Sequence record: NC_004629.1
Strand: one strand, 5' to 3'
Length of the DNA: 64,000 bases
The notes under the pieces are model-generated. The model searched no databases. It saw nothing but the letters and a program-made list of their open reading frames with translations, and was not told the DNA's origin. A program made the translations under genes and the position numbers. The number at the start of each line of letters is the position of its first letter. Position 1 is the first letter of the stretch. Shown one piece after another: positions 3,334 to 58,030 of this stretch.

Positions 3334-12097
<8,764 letters not shown>

Positions 12098-13204: not shown

Positions 13205-13224
13205 AAATTTGAGATTTATATTAC
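13205..13224 (+). promoter_or_regulatory. phiKZ-type early promoter
   Basis: AAATTTGAGATT-TATATTAC; TATATTAC is the established phiKZ early promoter core (13217-13224). Confidence 0.7.
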
Positions 13225-16840: not shown

Positions 16841-17632
16841 ATGTTTAAATCCTTGAACTTTAACTACACCACTCAACCTTCTACTGAAGGTATCTGTTTG
16901 TATATCGGTCATGGCGATATTGGACTACTTGAGGGTAATAAATCTTCAACTGGCATTACTAAGAAATTAGAACAATGTCCTTATTACCTACATGTTACTG
17001 TTGGTGAATCAAATACAGCTAACCAATTGACCATTACTGGTTATACTAATAACCAACCTAACATCCGTAGTTGGCATGGTCAAGAAGCTATGGACATTCT
17101 GCTGAATAATATCAACAGCAATAACAATGTGGTGCAACGAGAACTTAACTTTGAAGTACTCATTGAATCAGTTGAACGTAAAGACCCGCGCGTTATTATA
17201 CTAATGGCGCTAGGTGCACTTCCATCTCAAGATTACCCTGGTCATTTTGATGATTTAGCATCCGATAAGCAACTATTCAAACGGGTAGGCTCTTTCATTG
17301 ATTATAATGAAAAAGAATATAGTGATACATACAATACCATTACACGCAAATTATTTAACCTGTGTGGCTGTGGTTATCCAGAAGCGGAGTTGCGTTATAT
17401 TGATGATGTATTGGATATATATCGCCAAGGTCGGAATACTTCTAAACGTAATGAATGTAATAAGAAATATGGGTTTGGTCCAACTACATTCATGCTACAT
17501 TATCTAGATAGTCTTGGATTTGCCGAGCATGGTACAGGCGCTGCTGGTTGGCTGCTCGATGAAGGTGCATGGGTTAATGTATTAGTAAAATTGGCAATTA
17601 AGGAAACCGAGGGTGGATGCACTGATGTTTAA
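16841..17632 (+). CDS. Hypothetical protein (263 aa) with C-terminal YLDSLGFAEHG..AGWLLDEG motif
   Basis: GAGGA RBS; the C-terminal motif looks like a winged-helix-like segment seen in phage proteins of unknown function. Confidence 0.7.
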   Translation: MFKSLNFNYTTQPSTEGICLYIGHGDIGLLEGNKSSTGITKKLEQCPYYLHVTVGESNTANQLTITGYTNNQPNIRSWHGQEAMDILLNNINSNNNVVQRELNFEVLIESVERKDPRVIILMALGALPSQDYPGHFDDLASDKQLFKRVGSFIDYNEKEYSDTYNTITRKLFNLCGCGYPEAELRYIDDVLDIYRQGRNTSKRNECNKKYGFGPTTFMLHYLDSLGFAEHGTGAAGWLLDEGAWVNVLVKLAIKETEGGCTDV

Positions 17633-18350
17633 ATTATCGATGCGTGTATTTTGTGCGGTATTTCTGATTAGTATCGGCATGTGTACTAAAGCTAGTGTTA
17701 ATTACGAACCACTTGCTTTTTATGGTGTACCACTATTCTACTCTAATCATACTCCGCGAATTGCTCCATGTAACTTCGACCAACAATCTGGACTTGGTAG
17801 TTGCGGATGGACTAGTTATCCAGAATATTCAGTTATTCCATTAGTTAAACCAAGTGATCCAACTAAACAGATTCTTGTTAATTATTCGATGTATCAAGAA
17901 GTCATCTGTAATGATGAACAATGCTTTACTTCTGATTATCATGAGCCGTATGGTTTACTTTCAGGATTTAAAGGCACCACATATTGGTCTGTGCCAACTG
18001 GTTATTATCTACTAAATGGACCCAATGGTGTACATGGTGTTAAGTTTGGTAACGGACCATTAAAAGATAATTATCCTATTCGTGATATTTACATGATAAA
18101 TAATGATAGAGATATTGATGGCGAATACCTCTCTCTAAAAAATACTAAGGGAATTTATAATGTGATGTGTAGTCCATTGACCCAGATGTGTAAATATTTG
18201 GGTAAAGAGTACACTCTATTGGAACTAAACCAATTGATTCCTTTTGTAAAGACTACCATTTGTGATGAATACCTTTGTTACATCGATAATAGTAAAGGCA
18301 AGGTTGCAGGCATAAATCCAAAACGAAAGGATATTTATGAGGGGTTATAA
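17613..18350 (+). CDS. Exported Cys-rich protein (signal peptide; likely start 17625)
   Basis: MFKLSMRVFCAVFLISIGMCTKA signal-like N-terminus; 8 mature Cys in four close pairs. Confidence 0.7.
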   Translation: MDALMFKLSMRVFCAVFLISIGMCTKASVNYEPLAFYGVPLFYSNHTPRIAPCNFDQQSGLGSCGWTSYPEYSVIPLVKPSDPTKQILVNYSMYQEVICNDEQCFTSDYHEPYGLLSGFKGTTYWSVPTGYYLLNGPNGVHGVKFGNGPLKDNYPIRDIYMINNDRDIDGEYLSLKNTKGIYNVMCSPLTQMCKYLGKEYTLLELNQLIPFVKTTICDEYLCYIDNSKGKVAGINPKRKDIYEGL

Positions 18351-41529: not shown

Positions 41530-41898
41530 GTGATGCAATGTTTAACACACGTAATGAAGTTAGTGGCCGTATTAAGTACGTTGTTATACGTATCAAACCC
41601 ACTAGCTGCATCGTTGGTAGTTGACGAGAATTACTGTAATGGTGTTGCACTTATAGCACATGCCACAGCAGAAGCACGTCAGCGTAAAACACCCATTTTA
41701 CAATGGGAAGAAAACCTACGATCCCTAAAAGGGTACGGCGTGAAGAACAAAGATAACGTTCTTTACAATGTTCTCCCAGCAGCAATTAAAGAGGTGCACG
41801 TTGTGTATTCACGTAGACAAAGCCCACGTGATGCATACGTTACATCATTTAAAACCTGTATGGATAACAACTACGGTAAAGCTGTGGTTGTAAAATAA
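41530..41898 (+). CDS. Exported two-Cys helical protein (start 41530-41554)
   Basis: MKLVAVLSTLLYVSNPLAA signal; NYC near the mature N-terminus and TC near the C-terminus. Confidence 0.7.
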   Translation: MMQCLTHVMKLVAVLSTLLYVSNPLAASLVVDENYCNGVALIAHATAEARQRKTPILQWEENLRSLKGYGVKNKDNVLYNVLPAAIKEVHVVYSRRQSPRDAYVTSFKTCMDNNYGKAVVVK

Positions 41899-41900
41899 AT

Positions 41901-41920
41901 ACCAGCCCTTCGGGGCTGGT
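41901..41920 (+). terminator. Intrinsic terminator (UUCG loop)
   Basis: ACCAGCCC-TTCG-GGGCTGGT then TTATTT. Confidence 0.85.
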
Positions 41921-41933
41921 TTATTTCATCTAG

Positions 41934-42251
41934 ATGAGAATCTGTGGGTTGCAAATGTATAAAGTATTTGTTATATCAATGATAACACTAACGGCTATAT
42001 CAACATGTGTAACTTTCATTATTAATATAAAAAATCATTATATTCACTGGATGGGTGTTTATAAGGTTAGATATGTATTAGATAAAATGCCCAATGGCAT
42101 AAGTTATTTTTTCTATCAAAATGCTGTCCAAGACATTATAGATAAAGAATCATCTAAAATAACAAATCAACATATTTTTACATCTTTTATTTACGATATC
42201 AACTCATTGATTATATTAAAATGTAATAATAGGGAAACAGCAAATGAATGA
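41934..42251 (+). CDS. N-terminally anchored membrane protein
   Basis: VFVISMITLTAISTCVTFII hydrophobic segment. Confidence 0.55.
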   Translation: MRICGLQMYKVFVISMITLTAISTCVTFIINIKNHYIHWMGVYKVRYVLDKMPNGISYFFYQNAVQDIIDKESSKITNQHIFTSFIYDINSLIILKCNNRETANE

Positions 42252-42534
42252 TATCATGACAGTAATTATAGGTATTTTGTTTCTGATTATAATGATGGCT
42301 TTAATTAACTGGGGTTATTATGCCATCAAACACACGATAAAGTGTAACAGGCTTTATAAAGAAGCACTATCAATTATTGACAATATGAGTGATGGTTTAT
42401 CTGAATACCAGTATACAGTAGCTATTGGACGTTTACGTAAAAAGGCATACTCTATCGACCATTTAACTGCTGTTAAAATGTTTGAAGCATTAGACTTAGT
42501 TATTAAAGATAAGTCAAGAAAGAAAAATAAATAA
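42244..42534 (+). CDS. N-terminally anchored membrane protein (96 aa)
   Basis: IMTVIIGILFLIIMMALINWGYY transmembrane segment. Confidence 0.7.
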   Translation: MNDIMTVIIGILFLIIMMALINWGYYAIKHTIKCNRLYKEALSIIDNMSDGLSEYQYTVAIGRLRKKAYSIDHLTAVKMFEALDLVIKDKSRKKNK

Positions 42535-42542
42535 GCATAAAT

Positions 42543-42600
42543 AGGAGAGCTATTTAGCTCTCCTTTATTGCATTAAATTTTTTTTGAAATCTATATTACA
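42543..42600 (+). promoter_or_regulatory. Terminator (42543-42564) plus early promoter (TATATTAC 42592-42599)
   Basis: 42571-42600 CATTAAATTTTTTTTGAAATCTATATTACA is identical to 58001-58030. Confidence 0.8.
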
Positions 42601-42808
42601 TATTTGGTCAAGTCATATCAAAATAGGTAGTTATAATGCTAGCATTACATTCACTACTATTATTAGTTATAGTGATTTGTTATATAATTCATAAGTGGTT
42701 GTGGTATACTTTCAATATGTTTAAACTAAAAGACATTATTAAAAATAAAGACAATTTAACTAATGATGAACTATTAAAATTACTCATTGATAAAATAAAG
42801 GCAACCTA

Positions 42809-43276
42809 ATGTATCCATTCTTTACAGGTAATGAGAAAGTTACTGTAGATGTTCTTGATGATAAACATAATCTACATAGAAGTTGGACTGATTATAAACA
42901 TCCCATCACGACGCGTGTGGACGGTAAACTAACCAATGTGTGGTATAAAGTTGAACCACCGATGAGTGCTAAGGATATTGAAAATAACTTTACAATTGAC
43001 AAAGATAAAGTTAAATTATCTAATCGTTTGCACCAAGCTTTAGATGCAACGTTGATTAAAAATGAATTAGAAGAGTTTAACAAATTAATTGATCTATGCG
43101 TAAAACATGTTAATTCAGTTAGTATTCATCTAGGTCTTACTATTTGGAAATTAGCAGATACTGTAAAATATGAAAAAGCAGATTTAAAGAAACTATTTAA
43201 TGCACATTATACCAAATCTACTGAACTTGTAAAAGAAAAGAATATAGTGCCCTCAGTAGAAGATATCTTCCTATAA
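42809..43276 (+). CDS. Hypothetical protein (155 aa)
   Basis: ORF preceded by a coupled 30-codon ORF (42718-42810). Confidence 0.7.
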   Translation: MYPFFTGNEKVTVDVLDDKHNLHRSWTDYKHPITTRVDGKLTNVWYKVEPPMSAKDIENNFTIDKDKVKLSNRLHQALDATLIKNELEEFNKLIDLCVKHVNSVSIHLGLTIWKLADTVKYEKADLKKLFNAHYTKSTELVKEKNIVPSVEDIFL

Positions 43277-51797: not shown

Positions 51798-52694
51798 ATG
51801 AATAATCTACAAGTTAATACCACTATTAAAGAATTACATAAACTTCTAATCTGTAATATTATTGATGGTAAACTAATTGAATATAATGACATTGTGAAAG
51901 AACTGAAAATTACTAATGATGAATTAGATAATCTACTAATAGCTATTTCAAAGTTATCTGATACACCAATTAATAATATCTTTAAATCGCTTTCACTAGC
52001 GATTGATCTACGTACGATTACACCCGTCATTGAAAAACTTAGTAATTCTACGAAACTATCTAAAAAAGAAATCCAACTAGACCTGTTAACTAGTTTAGGA
52101 ATAAAAGATAATTATTTTTCGAATAGTTGCACTAACGTGTATCATGAACTAAGTGATATTATCAAAAAGCTTGAACATAGTGATAAACTATATCAAACAG
52201 ATTATCAAAACTTTATTATTGATAAAGTAACTAGTCATTTTAAAGATGTATTGTATTCGGCTGGTTATGCAATCAGTGATATTTATAAGTACACTGATTC
52301 TAAAGTAGTTAATGTAGATAAAAATGGACTATTGATAGGTATGAGCATTACCAATTATAGCTTCCATAATAAGGATGAACCAATTAGGACTATTGGTTTT
52401 TCATTAATTGATAAAACCGAATGTTGTGTTGGAAAATCTGAAACTATTAAAAAGTTTGATGTTGAAGATTTTCTTAATGCAATGGATACTATCAATATTA
52501 ACCCTACTTCTATTATTTTTTCAAACCAGTATCGAGAAAAAGACTTAGCCATTCATAATGGGATCATGAATGAATTTAAGGTGAACAAGATTTCAAATAA
52601 TACCCGTGATAATATAGTATCTTACTATATTGACATGATGGGACATAACTGTATTATCTCATTTAATCACAATGGGCTCCTATTAAAAATTTAA
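51798..52694 (+). CDS. Hypothetical protein (298 aa), very AT-rich
   Basis: AAGGT RBS; helical N-terminal half and beta-rich C-terminal half. Confidence 0.75.
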
Positions 52695-52751
52695 TAGAAT
52701 ATTAATTAAAAATTATCTTATGTAGTTTATCTAATTAAGGAAACAAAAAGA

Positions 52752-53108
52752 ATGCCAACTTATATTGAATTAATCAATATTGTCAATGATGATACTCCTG
52801 TAGATGATGCAGTTATTAGTGATCTGATGAGTCAAATGAATGATAAACAAACTGTTCTTGACAGTTGTCGTATCAATCATAAAGGCTATGCTTATTTTAA
52901 GTTCCATGTTAAGGGATCAATTAGTAAGGATAAACTTAAGGCTCTAAATGAAACTTTAAAAGATTCTAATCTTGTTGTGACTGATGCTAGTACACAACGT
53001 GGTTTCATGCCACCTAATAAGTTTGATGATATCACTTATACTGAAGAGAGTGTTGGTTATAGGGCAATGGTCTGGACAAGCTTCACTATTGAAAAGCTAC
53101 TTGTATAA
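52752..53108 (+). CDS. Hypothetical protein (118 aa)
   Basis: AAGGA RBS; terminator 53110-53129. Confidence 0.75.
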   Translation: MPTYIELINIVNDDTPVDDAVISDLMSQMNDKQTVLDSCRINHKGYAYFKFHVKGSISKDKLKALNETLKDSNLVVTDASTQRGFMPPNKFDDITYTEESVGYRAMVWTSFTIEKLLV

Positions 53109-53158
53109 TAAGAGCCCTTCGGGGCTCTTTCTATTTCGCAATTAGGTATCTGTATTAA

Positions 53159-53593
53159 ATGGATAAGTATCCTATTCTACAAGCTATGTCTAAAGAAGAG
53201 GCATTTAGACTTTTAGACATACAAGGTGAGTTTAGAAAAACTCAAATGAAAGAAAGGTATTGGAATGAGGAAACTGGTCTATGGTGGTGGGAACAACATC
53301 CCGATGTGAAATTAAGGATAGTTGCCGCCTGCAATAGATGGAAGGATGTTTATTTCATTGCAGCGAGGCATTCATCAATCATAATGACTCAACAACAGCT
53401 AATGTATGGTGGTCTTAAGGTATTGCATGAATATGCAGGAGATGATCATGAACAAGGTTTTATTGATCAGTATGAAAACTTCCACTCTAGGGAAGAAGCA
53501 GTAATTATCGCTAAGAATAATAATCAGTTATATCGAGCTGAATTAGAAAATAGATTAGTAACTAAATATTTATTTAGTGAAGACCTATATTAG
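53159..53593 (+). CDS. Conserved phage protein with RH / QGF / SREEA / SEDLY motifs
   Basis: IVAACNR..IAARHSS..EQGFIDQYENFHSREEAVIIAK..LFSEDLY. Confidence 0.75.
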   Translation: MDKYPILQAMSKEEAFRLLDIQGEFRKTQMKERYWNEETGLWWWEQHPDVKLRIVAACNRWKDVYFIAARHSSIIMTQQQLMYGGLKVLHEYAGDDHEQGFIDQYENFHSREEAVIIAKNNNQLYRAELENRLVTKYLFSEDLY

Positions 53594-53623
53594 GTTTCCA
53601 ATAATTTAAATAGGAATATAGCT

Positions 53624-54280
53624 ATGCTAATGAATGAAATTATCGATATTCTAGAAGGAGGGAAAGAGAATATTCTCTTAACTAACCATCTAGGTAATGG
53701 CAAATATTCCAATGCGGGTAATGCAATGGCTGCATCATATGCCATTGCGGCACATACTGCTGTTGGTCAATTGCGAGATGGTTCAGGAAAACCTTACTGG
53801 CATCATTTATTACAAGTAGCTGAGATGGCGCAATTATTCGACCTATCTCACGCTGCTTATAAAGCAGCATGGTTACATGATGTAATTGAGGATACTGCTG
53901 TAACTGCTTCTGATCTAACTAAACTATTCTCAATCCCTGTTGTTAATTTAGTAACTGAACTAACAAATGTAACTTACGAAGGTAATCGTAAAACTAGGAT
54001 TAGTTTACAACATGAAAGACTTTCTCGCATTTCATGGAGTGGTCAATCTCTTAAGTTACTAGATTCCATTTCAAACATGTGGTCGATTGTTAATGATAAG
54101 CCTGATTTTGCTGAACTGTATCTGACTGAGAAAGCTCAACTAATCAGTAAGTTAAATAATTGTCACCCCGCTATTAAAGATCTGGCTATATCTGTTCTCT
54201 ATGGCAGGTGTACTATGGTTGGTGGGGATGCACTAAAAGAATATAATAAACTATTTTCTGATAATGAAATTGTATGTTAA
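53624..54280 (+). CDS. Mesh1/SpoT-type HD hydrolase (small alarmone hydrolase-like)
   Basis: RDGSGKPYWHH, AAWLHDVIEDT (HDxxED), VTELT and KLLDSISNM motifs of RSH hydrolase domains; no synthetase domain. Confidence 0.85.
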   Translation: MLMNEIIDILEGGKENILLTNHLGNGKYSNAGNAMAASYAIAAHTAVGQLRDGSGKPYWHHLLQVAEMAQLFDLSHAAYKAAWLHDVIEDTAVTASDLTKLFSIPVVNLVTELTNVTYEGNRKTRISLQHERLSRISWSGQSLKLLDSISNMWSIVNDKPDFAELYLTEKAQLISKLNNCHPAIKDLAISVLYGRCTMVGGDALKEYNKLFSDNEIVC

Positions 54281-54298
54281 AATAATTACTTAATATAC

Positions 54299-54365
54299 AC
54301 CCTCCCTTCGGGGAGGGTTTTATTTATCTTTTTTTGTATTTAAACTATTTAAAAAGCTATATTAC
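54299..54365 (+). promoter_or_regulatory. Terminator (54299-54318) plus class B early promoter (TATATTAC 54358-54365)
   Basis: TTTGTATTTAAACTATTTAAAAAGC-TATATTAC-AAATATGA. Confidence 0.8.
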
Positions 54366-54398
54366 AAATATGAATTTAATAACCAAGAGGGCAATACA

Positions 54399-54662
54399 AT
54401 GACTGAACGTTTGAAATCCGTATGGTGCGCTTGCAGCTTACTGCGTGAACGCTGGAGACACATCCAAGACATTGCTGTCGGGGATGAACATCATGTCATA
54501 GTAAAAAACGATATGCTGATGGTGTTTCGTGGTCAAGTACCGGTAGGTAGCATGTACCGGGGTGACAGTGACCCACTCATCTACGAGGGTGGTGCACTGG
54601 AAGAATTTACTAAAGTTGTATTGGATTTAGAATTCAATACTCGTGGTGAAACCAATAGTTAA
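54399..54662 (+). CDS. Early hypothetical protein (87 aa)
   Basis: GAGGG RBS; first gene of the operon. Confidence 0.7.
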   Translation: MTERLKSVWCACSLLRERWRHIQDIAVGDEHHVIVKNDMLMVFRGQVPVGSMYRGDSDPLIYEGGALEEFTKVVLDLEFNTRGETNS

Positions 54663-54688
54663 TAAAATTAATTTTGAGGTAATTCATT

Positions 54689-55096
54689 ATGAAATATGTA
54701 ATTGTATTTATGTTGTCTATTGTAACTATCACTGCTAACTCGGCTGTCATGTACACTAATCGTGATTCATGCATCGAGTTTGTAAAACAGGCAGATGAAT
54801 TGTTTGTAAAAGGTGCATCTGTAACTGAAGTGCAAATGAAGACTTATGAAAGGATTCATTATATCCTTAATAACACTAAAGATCTAAAGACCAACCAGTC
54901 TAAAGTTGAAGAACTCACTGGTCTATTTTACCTATGGTCTAAGGTAGATAAAATGGCAATTGAGGCAAGTTTGCCACGTGCAACAAATGCTGCTAAAGTC
55001 TATAAGACCACTCCTGAGAAATTCATCATTGATGGTTATTTCCAGCGTTGTGTAGCGGCAGGTGCGTTTGAAGCAAAACCACTTACTCTAAAATAA
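54689..55096 (+). CDS. Exported two-Cys helical protein, array member 1
   Basis: Signal MKYVIVFMLSIVTITANS; RDSC...FQRC. Confidence 0.8.
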   Translation: MKYVIVFMLSIVTITANSAVMYTNRDSCIEFVKQADELFVKGASVTEVQMKTYERIHYILNNTKDLKTNQSKVEELTGLFYLWSKVDKMAIEASLPRATNAAKVYKTTPEKFIIDGYFQRCVAAGAFEAKPLTLK

Positions 55097-55108
55097 TGGA
55101 GGTACAAC

Positions 55109-55468
55109 ATGCTTAAGAATTGGCTATTATTCCTTTTCCTGCCAATCCTGTCCATTGCATGTCAGCCTGCCCACGCTGTAGAAGTGGGTATTACTAAGAA
55201 ATCATGTAATGTGGCAGTAAATCTTTCACAAAAAGCAACTGAGCTTTATGATAAGAACCTATCCCAATTTGAGATAATGATGCAGTTAGATATGATCTCT
55301 CGTAAGGATATGGATGACTTAGAGTTCTATGCAGGTACCGTATATGCTAAATTAAACTTAGTTGATATTCGCGTAAATAAACGAAAAGGATTTACCAATG
55401 GAGCTATTCTAGATAGGCTAGCTGAAAACTGTGTTGAAGCAATTGGTACTAAATTTAACTTGGAGTAG
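55109..55468 (+). CDS. Exported two-Cys helical protein, array member 2
   Basis: Signal ending AHA; KKSC...AENC. Confidence 0.8.
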   Translation: MLKNWLLFLFLPILSIACQPAHAVEVGITKKSCNVAVNLSQKATELYDKNLSQFEIMMQLDMISRKDMDDLEFYAGTVYAKLNLVDIRVNKRKGFTNGAILDRLAENCVEAIGTKFNLE

Positions 55469-55471
55469 AAT

Positions 55472-56266
55472 ATGGTTAGTATTTATATTGTCATTATACT
55501 CATGGCTATGCTAGCTGCATTGACATGTGGTAATTTGGTAGATAGCTGGGTAAGGCCAGCTATTCTAAAGTGGTTAAATGATGATGTCGCTATTCATTTC
55601 ACCAATGCTACCTGGATGGTTGGGGGGATCCCTAATAGTGTTCCAATGCAACTAGGTAAAGCTGTTTGGTTACCCAAATACGTGGGTGACGGAATACGTC
55701 TTTATATCACGGCTGATGAAATAAAATTTGGATGGAATGGTAAAGAAAAAGATGCTTTAGCACGAGCCATTGTTGAAGTTATCTTTATTGGTAAAAATCC
55801 AAATAGTAAACTTCTTGAAGTAAGTATTAAACCTATTTGGTTACACCCTTCTATCCAAAAAGAAAGTTTCTATTTAATGTTTGATTGGGAAAAGCTTTAT
55901 ACAAAAAATGAAGAGATGCGTATTTGTTGGAAGACAATACGTCACACTTTTTTCTATGGATTCCTAGGTTTGCTATTTGGCGGTAGTGCCAATGCAGATA
56001 ACCTTGTATTAACTGAACGTGGATGTGACCAATATGAAGCAATGGTGAGAACTATTGCATCTAAAGCTTATATTGGATTAGATCCAGTTATGGGTAGGGA
56101 ATTCATTATTAATGATCCTGATATGTTAAATGCCCGTGAGAAAGCACAACGTAATACCCGTATCATTATCGATATGGTGGAAACTGGACAAGAACCCAAA
56201 GACATTGCATTATGGATGAATACTCAATGTAAACAAGAAGCAGTGTCAAATTTAATCAAACAGTGA
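55472..56266 (+). CDS. Membrane protein fused to exported two-Cys domain, array member 3 (possible internal start 55916)
   Basis: N-terminal TM; internal signal-like MRICWKTIRHTFFYGFLGLLFGGSANA; ERGC...NTQC. Confidence 0.75.
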   Translation: MVSIYIVIILMAMLAALTCGNLVDSWVRPAILKWLNDDVAIHFTNATWMVGGIPNSVPMQLGKAVWLPKYVGDGIRLYITADEIKFGWNGKEKDALARAIVEVIFIGKNPNSKLLEVSIKPIWLHPSIQKESFYLMFDWEKLYTKNEEMRICWKTIRHTFFYGFLGLLFGGSANADNLVLTERGCDQYEAMVRTIASKAYIGLDPVMGREFIINDPDMLNAREKAQRNTRIIIDMVETGQEPKDIALWMNTQCKQEAVSNLIKQ

Positions 56267-56279
56267 AAAAGGCATAGAT

Positions 56280-56663
56280 ATGAAAAGAAATTTTGAAGAT
56301 GATCACGTGGTAATGGCAGTGGAAGTATATGAGAAACTGAAAGAAGCTGCTGCTTATTCATTACACTCTTCTGAAATTAGTAAGATCGAACGACATATGC
56401 GTAAGTTTAATCGTGTTCAACGCGATAAACATATTGAAAATATGCATATGGAAATGCTTGAGAAACGCGAGGCTATTAGAAAAGCAAAATCTTTCTTTTC
56501 TCAAAATGCCGGTAAAATTGGTTGCGTAGTAGATAGGCTTGTCAAAGTATGTGAAGTGTATAAAATGGATAAGTCTATGGTGGTTGTTGAGTTTCTCCAA
56601 CATAAATCTAAAATTAAAGTTCCAGTAAATCCTGAAAAAATTACTATTCTTACCATTAAATAA
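56280..56663 (+). CDS. Cytoplasmic hypothetical protein, paralog of 30997-31599
   Basis: Aligned N-terminal 80 aa. Confidence 0.75.
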   Translation: MKRNFEDDHVVMAVEVYEKLKEAAAYSLHSSEISKIERHMRKFNRVQRDKHIENMHMEMLEKREAIRKAKSFFSQNAGKIGCVVDRLVKVCEVYKMDKSMVVVEFLQHKSKIKVPVNPEKITILTIK

Positions 56664-56680
56664 ATGAAGAAGGATTTAAA

Positions 56681-57136
56681 ATGAAAAATGTAATTGCAGC
56701 AGCTTTCGCTGGTCTCATTGCCATTACCGGTATCATGTTCAATACCGCAATGGCTGAAATCAAGATTGGTAAAAAAGATGCTCAACTCACTGTGCAGTCG
56801 TGTGCAATGGTTGAAACCATTACTAAACAAGCTGTATTTCGAATGAGTGAAGGTCATAGCGCAGATGAAGTTGGTGTGCTTATGCTCAACAACTCTGCTA
56901 AACTCAAAGATGAGTTGGATACCAATAATTGGATTGCGTTAACATTCGTATTCAATAGTCTTAATAAAATCAATAATGACCTTAACAGTAAAGAGATCCA
57001 TGATTATATCCGTAGTCAAGGTTACAATGTGACTACTCCTAATCTGGCAGCTTTTATCAGCGGGTATTATGGCAATTACTGCATGAAGCATATTGGTGAG
57101 AAATTCACTCACATGGTAATTGTTGAACTCATTTAA
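56681..57136 (+). CDS. Exported two-Cys helical protein, array member 4
   Basis: Signal ending AMA; VQSC...GNYC. Confidence 0.8.
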   Translation: MKNVIAAAFAGLIAITGIMFNTAMAEIKIGKKDAQLTVQSCAMVETITKQAVFRMSEGHSADEVGVLMLNNSAKLKDELDTNNWIALTFVFNSLNKINNDLNSKEIHDYIRSQGYNVTTPNLAAFISGYYGNYCMKHIGEKFTHMVIVELI

Positions 57137-57168
57137 TTCATATCGAATACTTTCAAAAGGAAAATAGG

Positions 57169-57546
57169 ATGAAATACGTCTTCTCGCTCATTATCACTAT
57201 GGTAGCAATGTCGGTTAATGCACAACCCGTAACCGTGTCATCTTGCTACGTGCTGCACAGCTTGGCAAAGAATATGGTTCAATTCTACACTAATGGCGGT
57301 GAGCCATTGGAGATGTATGCAATACTGCAAGATGAACTATCCATTGCCATAGATAAAAACCAGAGTGATAAGGCACTCGCTATTAATATCGCATTGGATA
57401 ATGTCGATGTAATATACCAAAATCTCACTGATCCCGCACTTAAGCTTTTGGCAAAGAGCGAGGGAAGTGATCTTGGTGAGATGCTGACTGAAAAACTCAG
57501 TAATGGGTGTTTCAATATAGTCGGCGAGGAGTTGTATGATAACTAG
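57169..57546 (+). CDS. Exported two-Cys helical protein, array member 5
   Basis: Signal ending VNA; VSSC...SNGC. Confidence 0.8.
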   Translation: MKYVFSLIITMVAMSVNAQPVTVSSCYVLHSLAKNMVQFYTNGGEPLEMYAILQDELSIAIDKNQSDKALAINIALDNVDVIYQNLTDPALKLLAKSEGSDLGEMLTEKLSNGCFNIVGEELYDN

Positions 57547-57775
57547 AATCATCCTAATTGTTGCATGGGTATGGGTAATCTCTCTTATGGGAATGATTAC
57601 GTATGTTCTTTATGATACGTATCAATTTCGTAAGAAATTAGAAATGCCTGTTGTAGAATGGGAAGATAAGGCGAAGGACACTCCTGTTAAGAAGTGTCCA
57701 GATGAAGTATTATTCGCTGAAGACCCAAAGGATGGCAAACTCAAAATGGGATGCCCTGAGAGTTATAAGAAATAA
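57536..57775 (+). CDS. Bitopic membrane protein with two-Cys C-terminal loop (79 aa)
   Basis: IILIVAWVWVISLMGMITYVLY TM; KKCPDEV..MGCPES. Confidence 0.7.
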   Translation: MITRIILIVAWVWVISLMGMITYVLYDTYQFRKKLEMPVVEWEDKAKDTPVKKCPDEVLFAEDPKDGKLKMGCPESYKK

Positions 57776-57777
57776 TT

Positions 57778-57797
57778 AGAGGACCTTCGGGTCCTCT
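57778..57797 (+). terminator. Intrinsic terminator closing the exported-protein operon
   Basis: AGAGGACC-TTCG-GGTCCTCT then TTTT. Confidence 0.88.
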
Positions 57798-57857
57798 TTT
57801 TAACCGACTGGACGGTTAAAACTAGGTGGGATAAATTAAACTATTTGAGGAAATCTA

Positions 57858-57965
57858 ATGCAACTTAGTAATGAACTTTTCTATGTGGGTATGGTAGCTG
57901 TATCAATGTCAATCGGTATGCTATTTAGCTATATTTATCACACTCATAAGAAAAAATATAAATAA
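57858..57965 (+). CDS. Small membrane peptide (35 aa)
   Basis: GAGGA RBS; [35 protein letters not shown]. Confidence 0.6.
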
Positions 57966-57974
57966 AGTCATAAA

Positions 57975-58030
57975 CCCTCTCCCAAAGGAGAGGGCTTTTA
58001 CATTAAATTTTTTTTGAAATCTATATTACA
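57975..58030 (+). promoter_or_regulatory. Terminator (57975-57994) plus class A early promoter (TATATTAC 58022-58029)
   Basis: 30 bp identical to 42571-42600. Confidence 0.8.

Follow-up and report, generated by a model that had tools for sequence, protein, structure and literature searches.

What could a nucleus-forming jumbo phage gain from a cassette of early-type genes whose small products look destined for the periplasm of its host? Such a cassette is found in phage phiKZ, within the 64,000-nucleotide stretch of NC_004629.1 analyzed here (hereafter the window, 100% identical to phiKZ NC_004629 positions 186001-250000). Its genes, PHIKZ246.1, 247, 248, 249, 250, 251, 252 and 253, are annotated by number only. 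Literature searches with the gene names PHIKZ247 to PHIKZ253 and gp247 to gp252 found no functional study; in the two phiKZ-related papers that came from the gene-name search, gp248 appears solely as a table entry and the gp247 mentioned is that of phiPA3, which is unrelated. A sequence-only reading of the region had proposed that five of its open reading frames (ORFs), with a sixth copy elsewhere, encode a paralogous array of exported two-cysteine helical proteins, expanded in tandem and diversified in an arms race. Our analysis indicates that the protein family is very probably real and, by prediction, located in the periplasm. We describe the cassette as an "envelope module" that is conserved and accessory in nucleus-forming jumbo phages of Pseudomonas, and tentatively propose that the members of this family are binder or inhibitor proteins comparable to T4 Spackle.

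The ORFs and residues on which the proposal was built are all present. The ORFs starting at 54689, 55109, 55472, 56681 and 57169 are PHIKZ247, 248, 249, 251 and 252, respectively, and the copy at 41530, with its NYC and KTC contexts, is PHIKZ229. Translation confirms the contexts of the first cysteine (RDSC, KKSC, ERGC, VQSC, VSSC) and of the second one (FQRC, AENC, NTQC, GNYC, SNGC) in the cassette proteins. Each mature domain contains exactly two cysteines, the first located 8-16 residues from the N-terminal end and the second 11-17 residues from the C-terminal end, with 68-93 residues from one to the other. A rule-based signal-peptide scan of all window ORFs flagged, among annotated genes, only gp192, gp229, gp247, gp248, gp251 and gp252. 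Four of these six sit within the 2.9-kb cassette.

Taken alone, the presence of one cysteine near each end is not rare. From the cysteine frequency of window proteins (1.08%), about 0.02 occurrences are expected per protein, and gp195, gp196 and gp230, which are unrelated proteins of cytoplasmic or membrane type, carry the same pattern. It becomes convincing because it is coupled to a signal peptide and because the two mature cysteines, exactly two per mature domain, are invariant in 29 of 29 core-family sequences. All of the 20 relatives compiled first have a basic N-region, a hydrophobic core and an A-x-A-like site. Among those added later, 11 of 14 show this signal layout; of the other three, P0015 lacks part of its N-terminus, and P0021 and P0023 begin with long anchors. 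In the joint alignment of the core family, the invariant residues are the two cysteines and one glycine, five residues past the second cysteine. Both cysteines are likewise invariant in the gp247 group and in the gp229 group. From these signals we infer export of the family members to the periplasm. A single disulfide bond per protein is suggested by the predicted structure of mature gp251, in which Cys16 is placed a single turn inside helix 1 and Cys109 where the final helix ends, both beside the paired terminal strands; these secondary-structure positions imply that the two residues are close to each other in the model.

Three proteins form the core of the family: gp248 (PHIKZ248, 55109-55468, + strand, 119 aa, structural cysteines Cys33 and Cys108), gp251 (PHIKZ251, 56681-57136, + strand, 151 aa, signal peptide ending in TAMA↓E, Cys41 and Cys134) and gp252 (PHIKZ252, 57169-57546, + strand, 125 aa, signal peptide ending in SVNA↓Q, Cys26 and Cys114). 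The low sequence identity noted earlier was found again: BLAST and phmmer comparisons of the six proteins give a full-length pairwise alignment for gp251 and gp252 only, at 16% identity. gp248, gp251 and gp252 are nevertheless true homologs, as established by cross-validated hidden Markov models (HMMs), profile comparison and a Foldseek probability of 1.0 between subfamilies. With hhalign, the mature profiles of the gp248 and gp251 groups align across 93 columns (P 2.4e-4) and the gp251 group aligns with gp252 over the full length (P 4.8e-3). When the 292 stop-to-stop segments of the window were searched, HMMs made from one group returned the other two at ranks 2-3 (E 4.4e-6 to 3.4e-3), an HMM devoid of phiKZ-lineage sequences placed gp248, gp251 and gp252 at ranks 1-3, and gp252 was recovered by HMMs that excluded it (E 1.5e-3 to 1.9e-4). 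A weak HMM match to gp232, limited to 50 residues of a protein having no signal peptide, was taken as chance.

Structure prediction was carried out for two proteins, mature gp251 and gp247. The AlphaFold (AF2) model of mature gp251, with a predicted local distance difference test score (pLDDT) of 89 and a predicted template modeling score (pTM) of 0.82, consists of a strand (residues 2-10), six helices and a second strand (116-125). Compared with the BFVD set of viral models, it matches gp251-type and gp248-type proteins of Phabio, 201phi2-1, Psa21 and phiPA3 (including phiPA3 gp303) with a Foldseek probability of 1.0. Searches of Pfam, NCBIfam and PADLOC gave no credible match for the family. 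Searches of the PDB by sequence and with the gp251 model gave no credible solved relative, the best Foldseek E-value being 0.36 among the best 50 of 185 matches. The earlier statement that no function had been described therefore agrees with what the gene-name literature searches, the family libraries and the solved structures returned. gp247, gp248, gp251 and gp252 are each a full-length member of one of PHROGs 27482, 15284, 22400 and 26535, and gp251 also reaches the PHROG of gp248 at E 0.0026. These are four separate groups without annotation, in which neither a common origin and fold nor the signal and disulfide design is recorded. The family is undescribed and its fold probably new. Even if its members were ordinary periplasmic accessories, four unannotated PHROGs would merge into one family.

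In DNA comparisons, 47 phiKZ-species records carry the cassette with an identity of 99% or more, and it is missing from more distant phages. At the protein level, tblastn identifies gp248 orthologs with 25-39% identity in phiPA3 (gp303), Phabio, PS119XW, HPP-Temi, Psa21, RVTF4 and D6. The same search with gp251 gave no match outside the phiKZ species; its orthologs in other phages came from synteny and a profile search instead. Synteny was compared in seven related phages belonging to at least four genera. As in phiKZ, a gene for an HD phosphohydrolase (gp246-type) precedes the gp248-type gene in phiPA3, PS119XW and HPP-Temi; the phosphohydrolase is not annotated in the stretches from Phabio, Psa21, RVTF4 and D6. 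Three signal-peptide two-cysteine genes are found in tandem in PS119XW (gp300, gp301 and gp302) and in HPP-Temi, two at the locus in Psa21, RVTF4, D6 and a metagenomic phage (L010), and one in phiPA3 and Phabio. A profile search against 1.84 billion representative proteins gave 16 matches at E < 1e-3. Fourteen are small proteins with two cysteines and a signal peptide or an N-terminal anchor, and the rest are a 69-aa fragment and a 2363-aa repeat protein. The latter (P0014), with ten short matches, was treated as a repeat artefact. All traceable matches come from Pseudomonas jumbo phages (chimallivirus) or from metagenomic relatives. Partial proteins labeled Klebsiella pneumoniae, from contigs of 210-635 bp, are identical or near-identical to gp229, gp248, gp249 and gp252 and look like phiKZ reads contaminating assemblies.

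The idea of an arms race between members with divergent surfaces is not supported by these relatives. In the tree, the gp248-type clade extends across several phage genera (support 96/96), gp251-type proteins are found in the same genera as the gp248-type lineage, and gp251 and gp252 are long-branched sisters (support 93/91). The sister pair indicates one probable duplication specific to the phiKZ lineage, and the remainder of the paralogs are, by the tree, old orthologous groups. Tandem expansion, as proposed, is hence limited to gp251/gp252. Selection was evaluated against L009, a 6.4-kb contig of a phiKZ relative with about 80% protein identity that keeps the gene order from gp244 to gp256 without gp246.1. 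Ratios of non-synonymous to synonymous substitution rates (dN/dS) are 0.09 for gp247, 0.03 for gp248, 0.10 for gp249, 0.16 for gp252 and 0.09 for gp253, as compared with 0.04-0.13 for five flanking genes; dS approaches or exceeds saturation (up to 2.3), which makes these ratios approximate. For gp251, dS is saturated and dN is 0.12. All cysteines are retained between phiKZ and L009. Purifying selection similar to that of the neighbors (dN/dS 0.03-0.16), the near-identity of the isolates and the age of the orthologous groups led us to reject diversifying selection.

Early production, another part of the initial proposal, is consistent with two observations. An exact copy of the core motif TATATTAC, the phiKZ promoter motif published in PMC7058600, is located at 54358-54365 on the + strand with a T-rich context upstream; this extended context, which follows a terminator, is common to seven other window sites. 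In L009, the promoter is conserved immediately 5' of gp247, with the terminator kept and gp246.1 missing (L009 1861-1994 as compared with window 54280-54689). Transcription of the cassette from an early-type promoter is thereby supported at the level of sequence motifs. Moreover, proteomics of phage Churi revealed gp059, a gp248 copy with 100% identity, at 15 min post-infection (PMC11849849).

The cassette is dispensable, since one isolate has lost it entirely. Phage vB_PaeM_FBPa36 (PP813861.1, L018) carries a natural 5.8-kb deletion of window positions 52047-57861. The deletion takes the 3' part of gp243, gp244-gp246 and the entire gp246.1-gp253 cassette, and leaves at its junction a 113-aa fusion ORF made of the gp243 N-terminus and the gp253.1 C-terminus. 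FBPa36 is otherwise phiKZ-like, with downstream DNA 98% identical and an identical gp229. A transposon sequencing (TnSeq) preprint describes orf184-304 as a broad, largely non-essential region and does not name the cassette genes. The family is therefore conserved and dispensable, and is not fast-evolving.

What would such proteins do? Early phage proteins exported to the periplasm are already known from T4 and T5; the present family itself has not been described before, and no solved structure is related to it. We favor, with a probability of about 0.4 and by analogy, the view that the family belongs to a functional class of periplasmic binders or inhibitors that secure the infected envelope, as Spackle does. 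According to this proposal, the periplasm would contain gp247, gp251, gp252 and the unlinked gp229 as soluble proteins, and gp248 might be held by a lipid anchor. In the mature domain, about 95-130 residues long, the N- and C-termini would form a two-stranded sheet that caps a helical bundle, with one disulfide, presumably formed via host DsbA, tying the first helix to the last. gp249, gp253 and gp253.1 would be inner-membrane proteins and two further operon proteins cytoplasmic. The family members would act throughout the long infection as stoichiometric binders or inhibitors of periplasm-exposed proteins, different paralogs possibly having different targets. They might be directed against the peptidoglycan-cleaving tail devices of later-arriving phages, host wall hydrolases or a receptor. 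We propose gp181, the tail-associated lysin of phiKZ (window 3334-10047), as the first target to consider.

The comparison with T4 Spackle (gp61.3) is the closest that we found in terms of design. Spackle is made early; its signal is cleaved off, and the mature protein is a helical bundle of 75 aa with a Cys29-Cys81 disulfide. It forms a 1:1 complex with the tail lysozyme gp5, prevents superinfection and guards against lysis (PMC7677548). Its first cysteine is 7 residues past the cleavage site and its second one 16 residues before the C-terminal end, which is similar to the placement in the phiKZ family. Both are early-made, small helical bundles with one disulfide between N- and C-proximal positions (predicted in the case of phiKZ), non-essential and conserved among homologs. 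The phiKZ proteins differ in being larger (95-130 residues versus 75), in having an extra two-stranded terminal sheet and in occurring as several paralogs. In addition, slower bulk lysis of phiKZ cultures has been reported at high multiplicity (PMC12894885), and would fit an envelope-level response to secondary adsorption.

Several points weigh against this assignment. Alignment of the family with T4 Spackle by hhalign gives a probability of 0.2%, Spackle was not found in the PDB sequence search with the family, and its chain is absent among the best 50 of the 185 Foldseek PDB matches to the gp251 model. The low hhalign probability and the lack of a fold match make the resemblance one of analogy, not homology. 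Because similarity to Spackle, to solved structures and to Pfam, NCBIfam or PADLOC entries was not found, the functional analogy is drawn from design and timing only. The signal peptides themselves were judged by the rule-based scan, and the A-x-A type cleavage sites were picked by eye. Phages of the phiKZ type are known from the literature to co-infect single cells, which means that any exclusion must be incomplete. Finally, the confinement of the family to Pseudomonas phages, as deduced from sequence searches, also fits a host-specific target that has nothing to do with exclusion.

The second system that deserves comparison is T5 Llp, which mediates superinfection exclusion (PMC9586334). Like the phiKZ proteins, the Llp/Cor-type lipoproteins (FhuA blockers) are small, made after infection and exported to the envelope, and some are lipoproteins; gp248 and several of its relatives carry a lipobox-type cysteine. 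No structural or sequence match to Llp/Cor-type lipoproteins was found in the PDB searches (for the fold, among the best 50 of 185 matches). The gp248 signal contains a lipobox-like LSIA↓C18, which fits a PROSITE-like pattern, followed by a signal peptidase I site, AHA↓V. Cys18 is invariant in an alignment of 8 sequences, the UniRef label of the PA7 copy of gp248 is "Lipoprotein", and three gp251-type relatives have good lipoboxes (LIGC, MLGC and LAAC). Lipidation is made uncertain by the good signal peptidase I site that follows the cysteine and by the non-canonical residue, Met or Thr, found at position -1 in 4 of the 11 cysteine-bearing relatives of the gp248 clade. Two full-length relatives have no lipobox cysteine, and P0015 is truncated at its N-terminus. 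The odds that gp248 is lipid-anchored, as read from its signal sequence, are therefore roughly even. Cys26 of gp252 (TVSSC) formally satisfies the same lipobox pattern; we consider this match coincidental because the residue aligns with the conserved first cysteine of the family, 8 residues past a good VNA↓Q site.

The lipobox cysteine of gp248 precedes a PelB-like signal peptidase I site of the QPA-x-A type. The signal of T4 Spackle, LASC-AAQPAMA↓G, has the same layout, yet its mature chain is described as beginning after the A-x-A site (PMC7677548), which also speaks against lipidation of gp248. In both Spackle (positions 4759-5052 of L019) and the gp248-type signals (window 55109-55180), the hydrophobic core ends in a cysteine, behind which come (AA)QPA-x-A and the cleavage site, an unusual layout. 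This likeness could be convergence on a shared type of signal end or a dual arrangement of lipobox and signal peptidase I site.

The module provides a candidate set of proteins for envelope-level functions, for example superinfection exclusion, protection against lysis from without, a possible lysis-inhibition signal or receptor masking. Work on nucleus-forming jumbo phages centers on intracellular shielding of DNA, and their activity at the envelope is almost unstudied; in a 2026 jumbo-phage review, the words "secreted", "lipoprotein" and "superinfection" are all missing. The module comprises between four and six related proteins, of which one or more is produced early, and their fold is probably new; FBPa36 offers a natural deletion control. 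phiKZ-like phages such as OMKO1, in which the cassette is present, have been proposed for therapy, where exclusion of other phages or of pyocins would matter for cocktail design.

The predicted localization and the timing evidence that argue for a Spackle-like role apply equally to a manipulation of the host envelope for the needs of the phage's own cycle. In that case, the proteins would bind host periplasmic enzymes, stress sensors or defense components, so that the wall is kept intact, stress signaling is silenced or bulging is allowed. The restriction of the family to Pseudomonas phages suits such a host-specific target, and old, conserved paralogs suit stable host targets better than changing rivals. 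A review also reports that phiKZ infection bulges the envelope (PMC13282480). However, searches of Pfam, NCBIfam, PADLOC and the PDB found no homology to known inhibitor families, and the loss of the cassette in FBPa36 means that it is not needed for the basic cycle. We regard host-envelope manipulation as possible, though somewhat doubtful.

The extent of the family raises a different issue, which concerns gp247, gp229 and the C-terminal half of gp249. gp247 (PHIKZ247, 54689-55096, + strand, 135 aa) has a signal peptide ending in TANSA↓V and cysteines at positions 28 and 121. In the window segments, it is the top non-member match to the full family HMM (E 0.06) and ranks 5th to 8th with partial family HMMs, E-values ranging overall from 0.05 to 0.14. 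An HMM made from PS119XW gp302 and HPP-Temi 113 ranks gp247 first (E 0.07). HHalign aligns gp247 with the family colinearly from cysteine to cysteine, without reaching significance. The gp247 model is weak (pLDDT 60, just 4 aligned sequences), so the finding that its best non-self BFVD match is gp251 is only suggestive. The model of its PS119XW counterpart, the gp247-type gp302 (BFVD A0A5C1K949), matches that of gp251 with a Foldseek probability of 0.96 and a template modeling score (TM) of 0.52. From these models, gp247 is probably a divergent member sharing the fold of the family.

The unlinked gp229 (PHIKZ229, 41530-41898, + strand, 121-122 aa) also has a signal peptide. No sequence-profile link between gp229 and the family was found. 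Orthologs with 39-55% identity, in which both cysteines are invariant, are present in PS119XW, phiPA3 (gp269), Phabio and 201phi2-1 (gp343), and the model of the PS119XW one (gp264, A0A5C1K8Y4) matches gp251 with a Foldseek probability of 0.85. Like the core family, the gp229 group shows a strand-x-x-x-Cys start and a Cys-x5-Gly-strand end; a strand-x-x-x-Cys start and a Cys-x4-5-Gly-strand end are common to the family groups. Structural models thus suggest that gp229 probably represents a separate, better conserved subfamily with the same fold. In the window, gp229 is followed by three small proteins, PHIKZ230, 230.1 and 230.2, each with one N-terminal hydrophobic anchor, and an early-type promoter context is present at 42592. 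The stretch with these four genes (41530-42809) appears to be another small group whose products are directed to the envelope.

gp249 (PHIKZ249, 55472-56266, + strand, 264 aa) has hydrophobic segments at 1-19 and about 157-173. The second one is signal-like and precedes an 89-aa C-terminal domain with Cys185 and Cys253. The C-terminal half was considered as a separate ORF with an internal start at Met149. This was rejected, as Met149 has no usable ribosome-binding site and the fusion is kept in L009; gp249 is one protein. Positive-inside charge counts suggest that its N-terminus is outside, its middle part cytoplasmic and its C-terminal domain periplasmic. As a colinear member of the family, the C-terminal half was also discarded: hhalign places the helix1-loop-helix2 motif of the family near its C-terminal end. 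By sequence comparison, it shares only the design of the family. Among the relatives found, gp249 is confined to phiKZ and the L009 lineage.

The array of five plus one paralogs initially proposed is hence firm for gp248, gp251 and gp252 and probable for gp247 and gp229, through the Foldseek matches of their orthologs, but does not hold for the C-terminal half of gp249. A stricter view is that no single family exists beyond the three core proteins, and that gp247, the gp249 C-terminal half and gp229 are unrelated secreted proteins with a typical periplasmic disulfide. The profile links, insignificant for gp247, non-colinear for gp249 and absent for gp229, are in line with this view, as are the cysteine pattern of the three unrelated window proteins and the low confidence of the gp247 model. 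The matches of the PS119XW orthologs to the gp251 model, the rank of gp247 among 292 segments, its best match in BFVD and the common start and end motifs of the groups speak against it, and we consider it unlikely.

The products of the operon are predicted for all three envelope locations, which would also be expected of a trans-envelope or membrane-remodeling complex. gp249, gp253 and gp253.1 would then associate with the soluble subunits and with gp248 as a possible outer-membrane lipoprotein, possibly with saposin-like lipid binding. gp253 (PHIKZ253, 57536-57775, + strand, 79 aa) combines a membrane anchor at its N-terminus with a charged tail in which Cys54 and Cys73 each belong to a Cys-Pro motif. 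Its topology is ambiguous by charge count. With 96% identity to L009, no other gene of the cassette is as well conserved. PS119XW has a similar set of small membrane and signal-peptide proteins. After its three family genes, at the position of gp253, lies a gene for a 56-aa anchored protein with two cysteines in its tail (gp303, L004 5348-5518), and no sequence similarity between this protein and gp253 was found. In other genera, a conserved multi-segment membrane protein of 83-92 aa is encoded one or two genes 5' of the gp248-type gene (PS119XW gp299, L004 3600-3872; similar in L005, L007, L008 and L010).

Saposins are lipid-binding bundles of four or five helices with three conserved disulfides. 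Saposins A and C, bundles clamped by disulfides at their terminal helices, are among the weak PDB neighbors of the gp251 model. Their Foldseek probabilities are just 0.25 and 0.13, with target-normalized TM of 0.56 and 0.47, and the family has one disulfide (predicted) instead of three. Moreover, counterparts of gp249 and gp253 were not detected beyond the phiKZ lineage, unlike those of the soluble family, and the copy number at the locus varies from one to five among phages. A complex of this kind is accordingly quite unlikely. We also considered a spanin or holin role for gp247-253. The phiKZ lysis cassette gp141-gp144 encodes i-spanin, o-spanin lipoprotein, holin, regulator and endolysin; the spanins gp141/gp141.1 were shown by complementation, and spanin, holin and endolysin genes were experimentally tested (PMC12894885). 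It resembles the present cassette in that its proteins are targeted to the envelope and include a membrane anchor, periplasmic helices and a lipobox, but it consists of other proteins at another locus, is late-acting and is largely essential. Since the lysis roles are already assigned to gp141-144, about 100 genes away from this early-type operon, a spanin or holin role of gp247-253 was rejected.

It is very unlikely that the signal peptides deliver the proteins to the lumen or membrane of the early phage infection (EPI) vesicle, a compartment derived from the inner membrane in which the chimallivirus genome is initially enclosed after injection and which bears polysomes on its surface (bioRxiv 10.1101/2023.09.20.558163), or that the operon products form a phage-built trans-envelope structure, with host Sec furnishing a phage compartment.

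The limits of the transcription unit differ slightly from those first proposed. Upstream, an intrinsic terminator (54299-54318, + strand, a stem of 8 pairs followed by a T-run) closes the preceding unit after gp246, the HD phosphohydrolase; it fits the conserved phiKZ terminator motif (PMC10914365) and is also kept in L009. Downstream, the presumed terminator at 57778-57797, directly 3' of gp253, is a real palindromic hairpin, but it has just four T behind it on the + strand. The canonical phiKZ-type terminator, matching the motif in PMC10914365, is at 57975-57994 (+ strand), 3' of PHIKZ253.1 (57858-57965, + strand, 35 aa, one hydrophobic segment), and the next early-type promoter is at 58022. 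The unit therefore probably spans 54358 to about 57994. gp253 is indeed a bitopic protein with two cysteines, as had been noted, but gp253.1 is probably the final gene.

The operon also includes two proteins without signal peptides. gp246.1 (PHIKZ246.1, 54399-54662, + strand, 87 aa), the product of its first gene, is accessory and is absent from L009. The gene for gp250 (PHIKZ250, 56280-56663, + strand, 127 aa) evolves faster than any other in the cassette (60% identity to L009, dN/dS 0.23); no similarity was found between gp250 and the product of the cytoplasmic gene located between the two family genes of Psa21.

Finally, two side observations concern the rest of the window. On the + strand, TATATTAC occurs at 13217, 27064, 42592, 50855, 51287, 54358, 58022 and 60707 (n=8) within a module made of a GC-rich terminator hairpin, a T-rich spacer and the motif. 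Sites 50855, 54358 and 60707 are near-identical across about 40 bases, whereas sites 20349 and 40486 occur without the terminator and T-rich context. PHIKZ192 (17613-18350) also encodes an exported-looking protein, with a signal peptide ending in SIGMCTKA↓S and a mature part of about 218 aa containing eight cysteines in close pairs, which is unrelated to the two-cysteine family.

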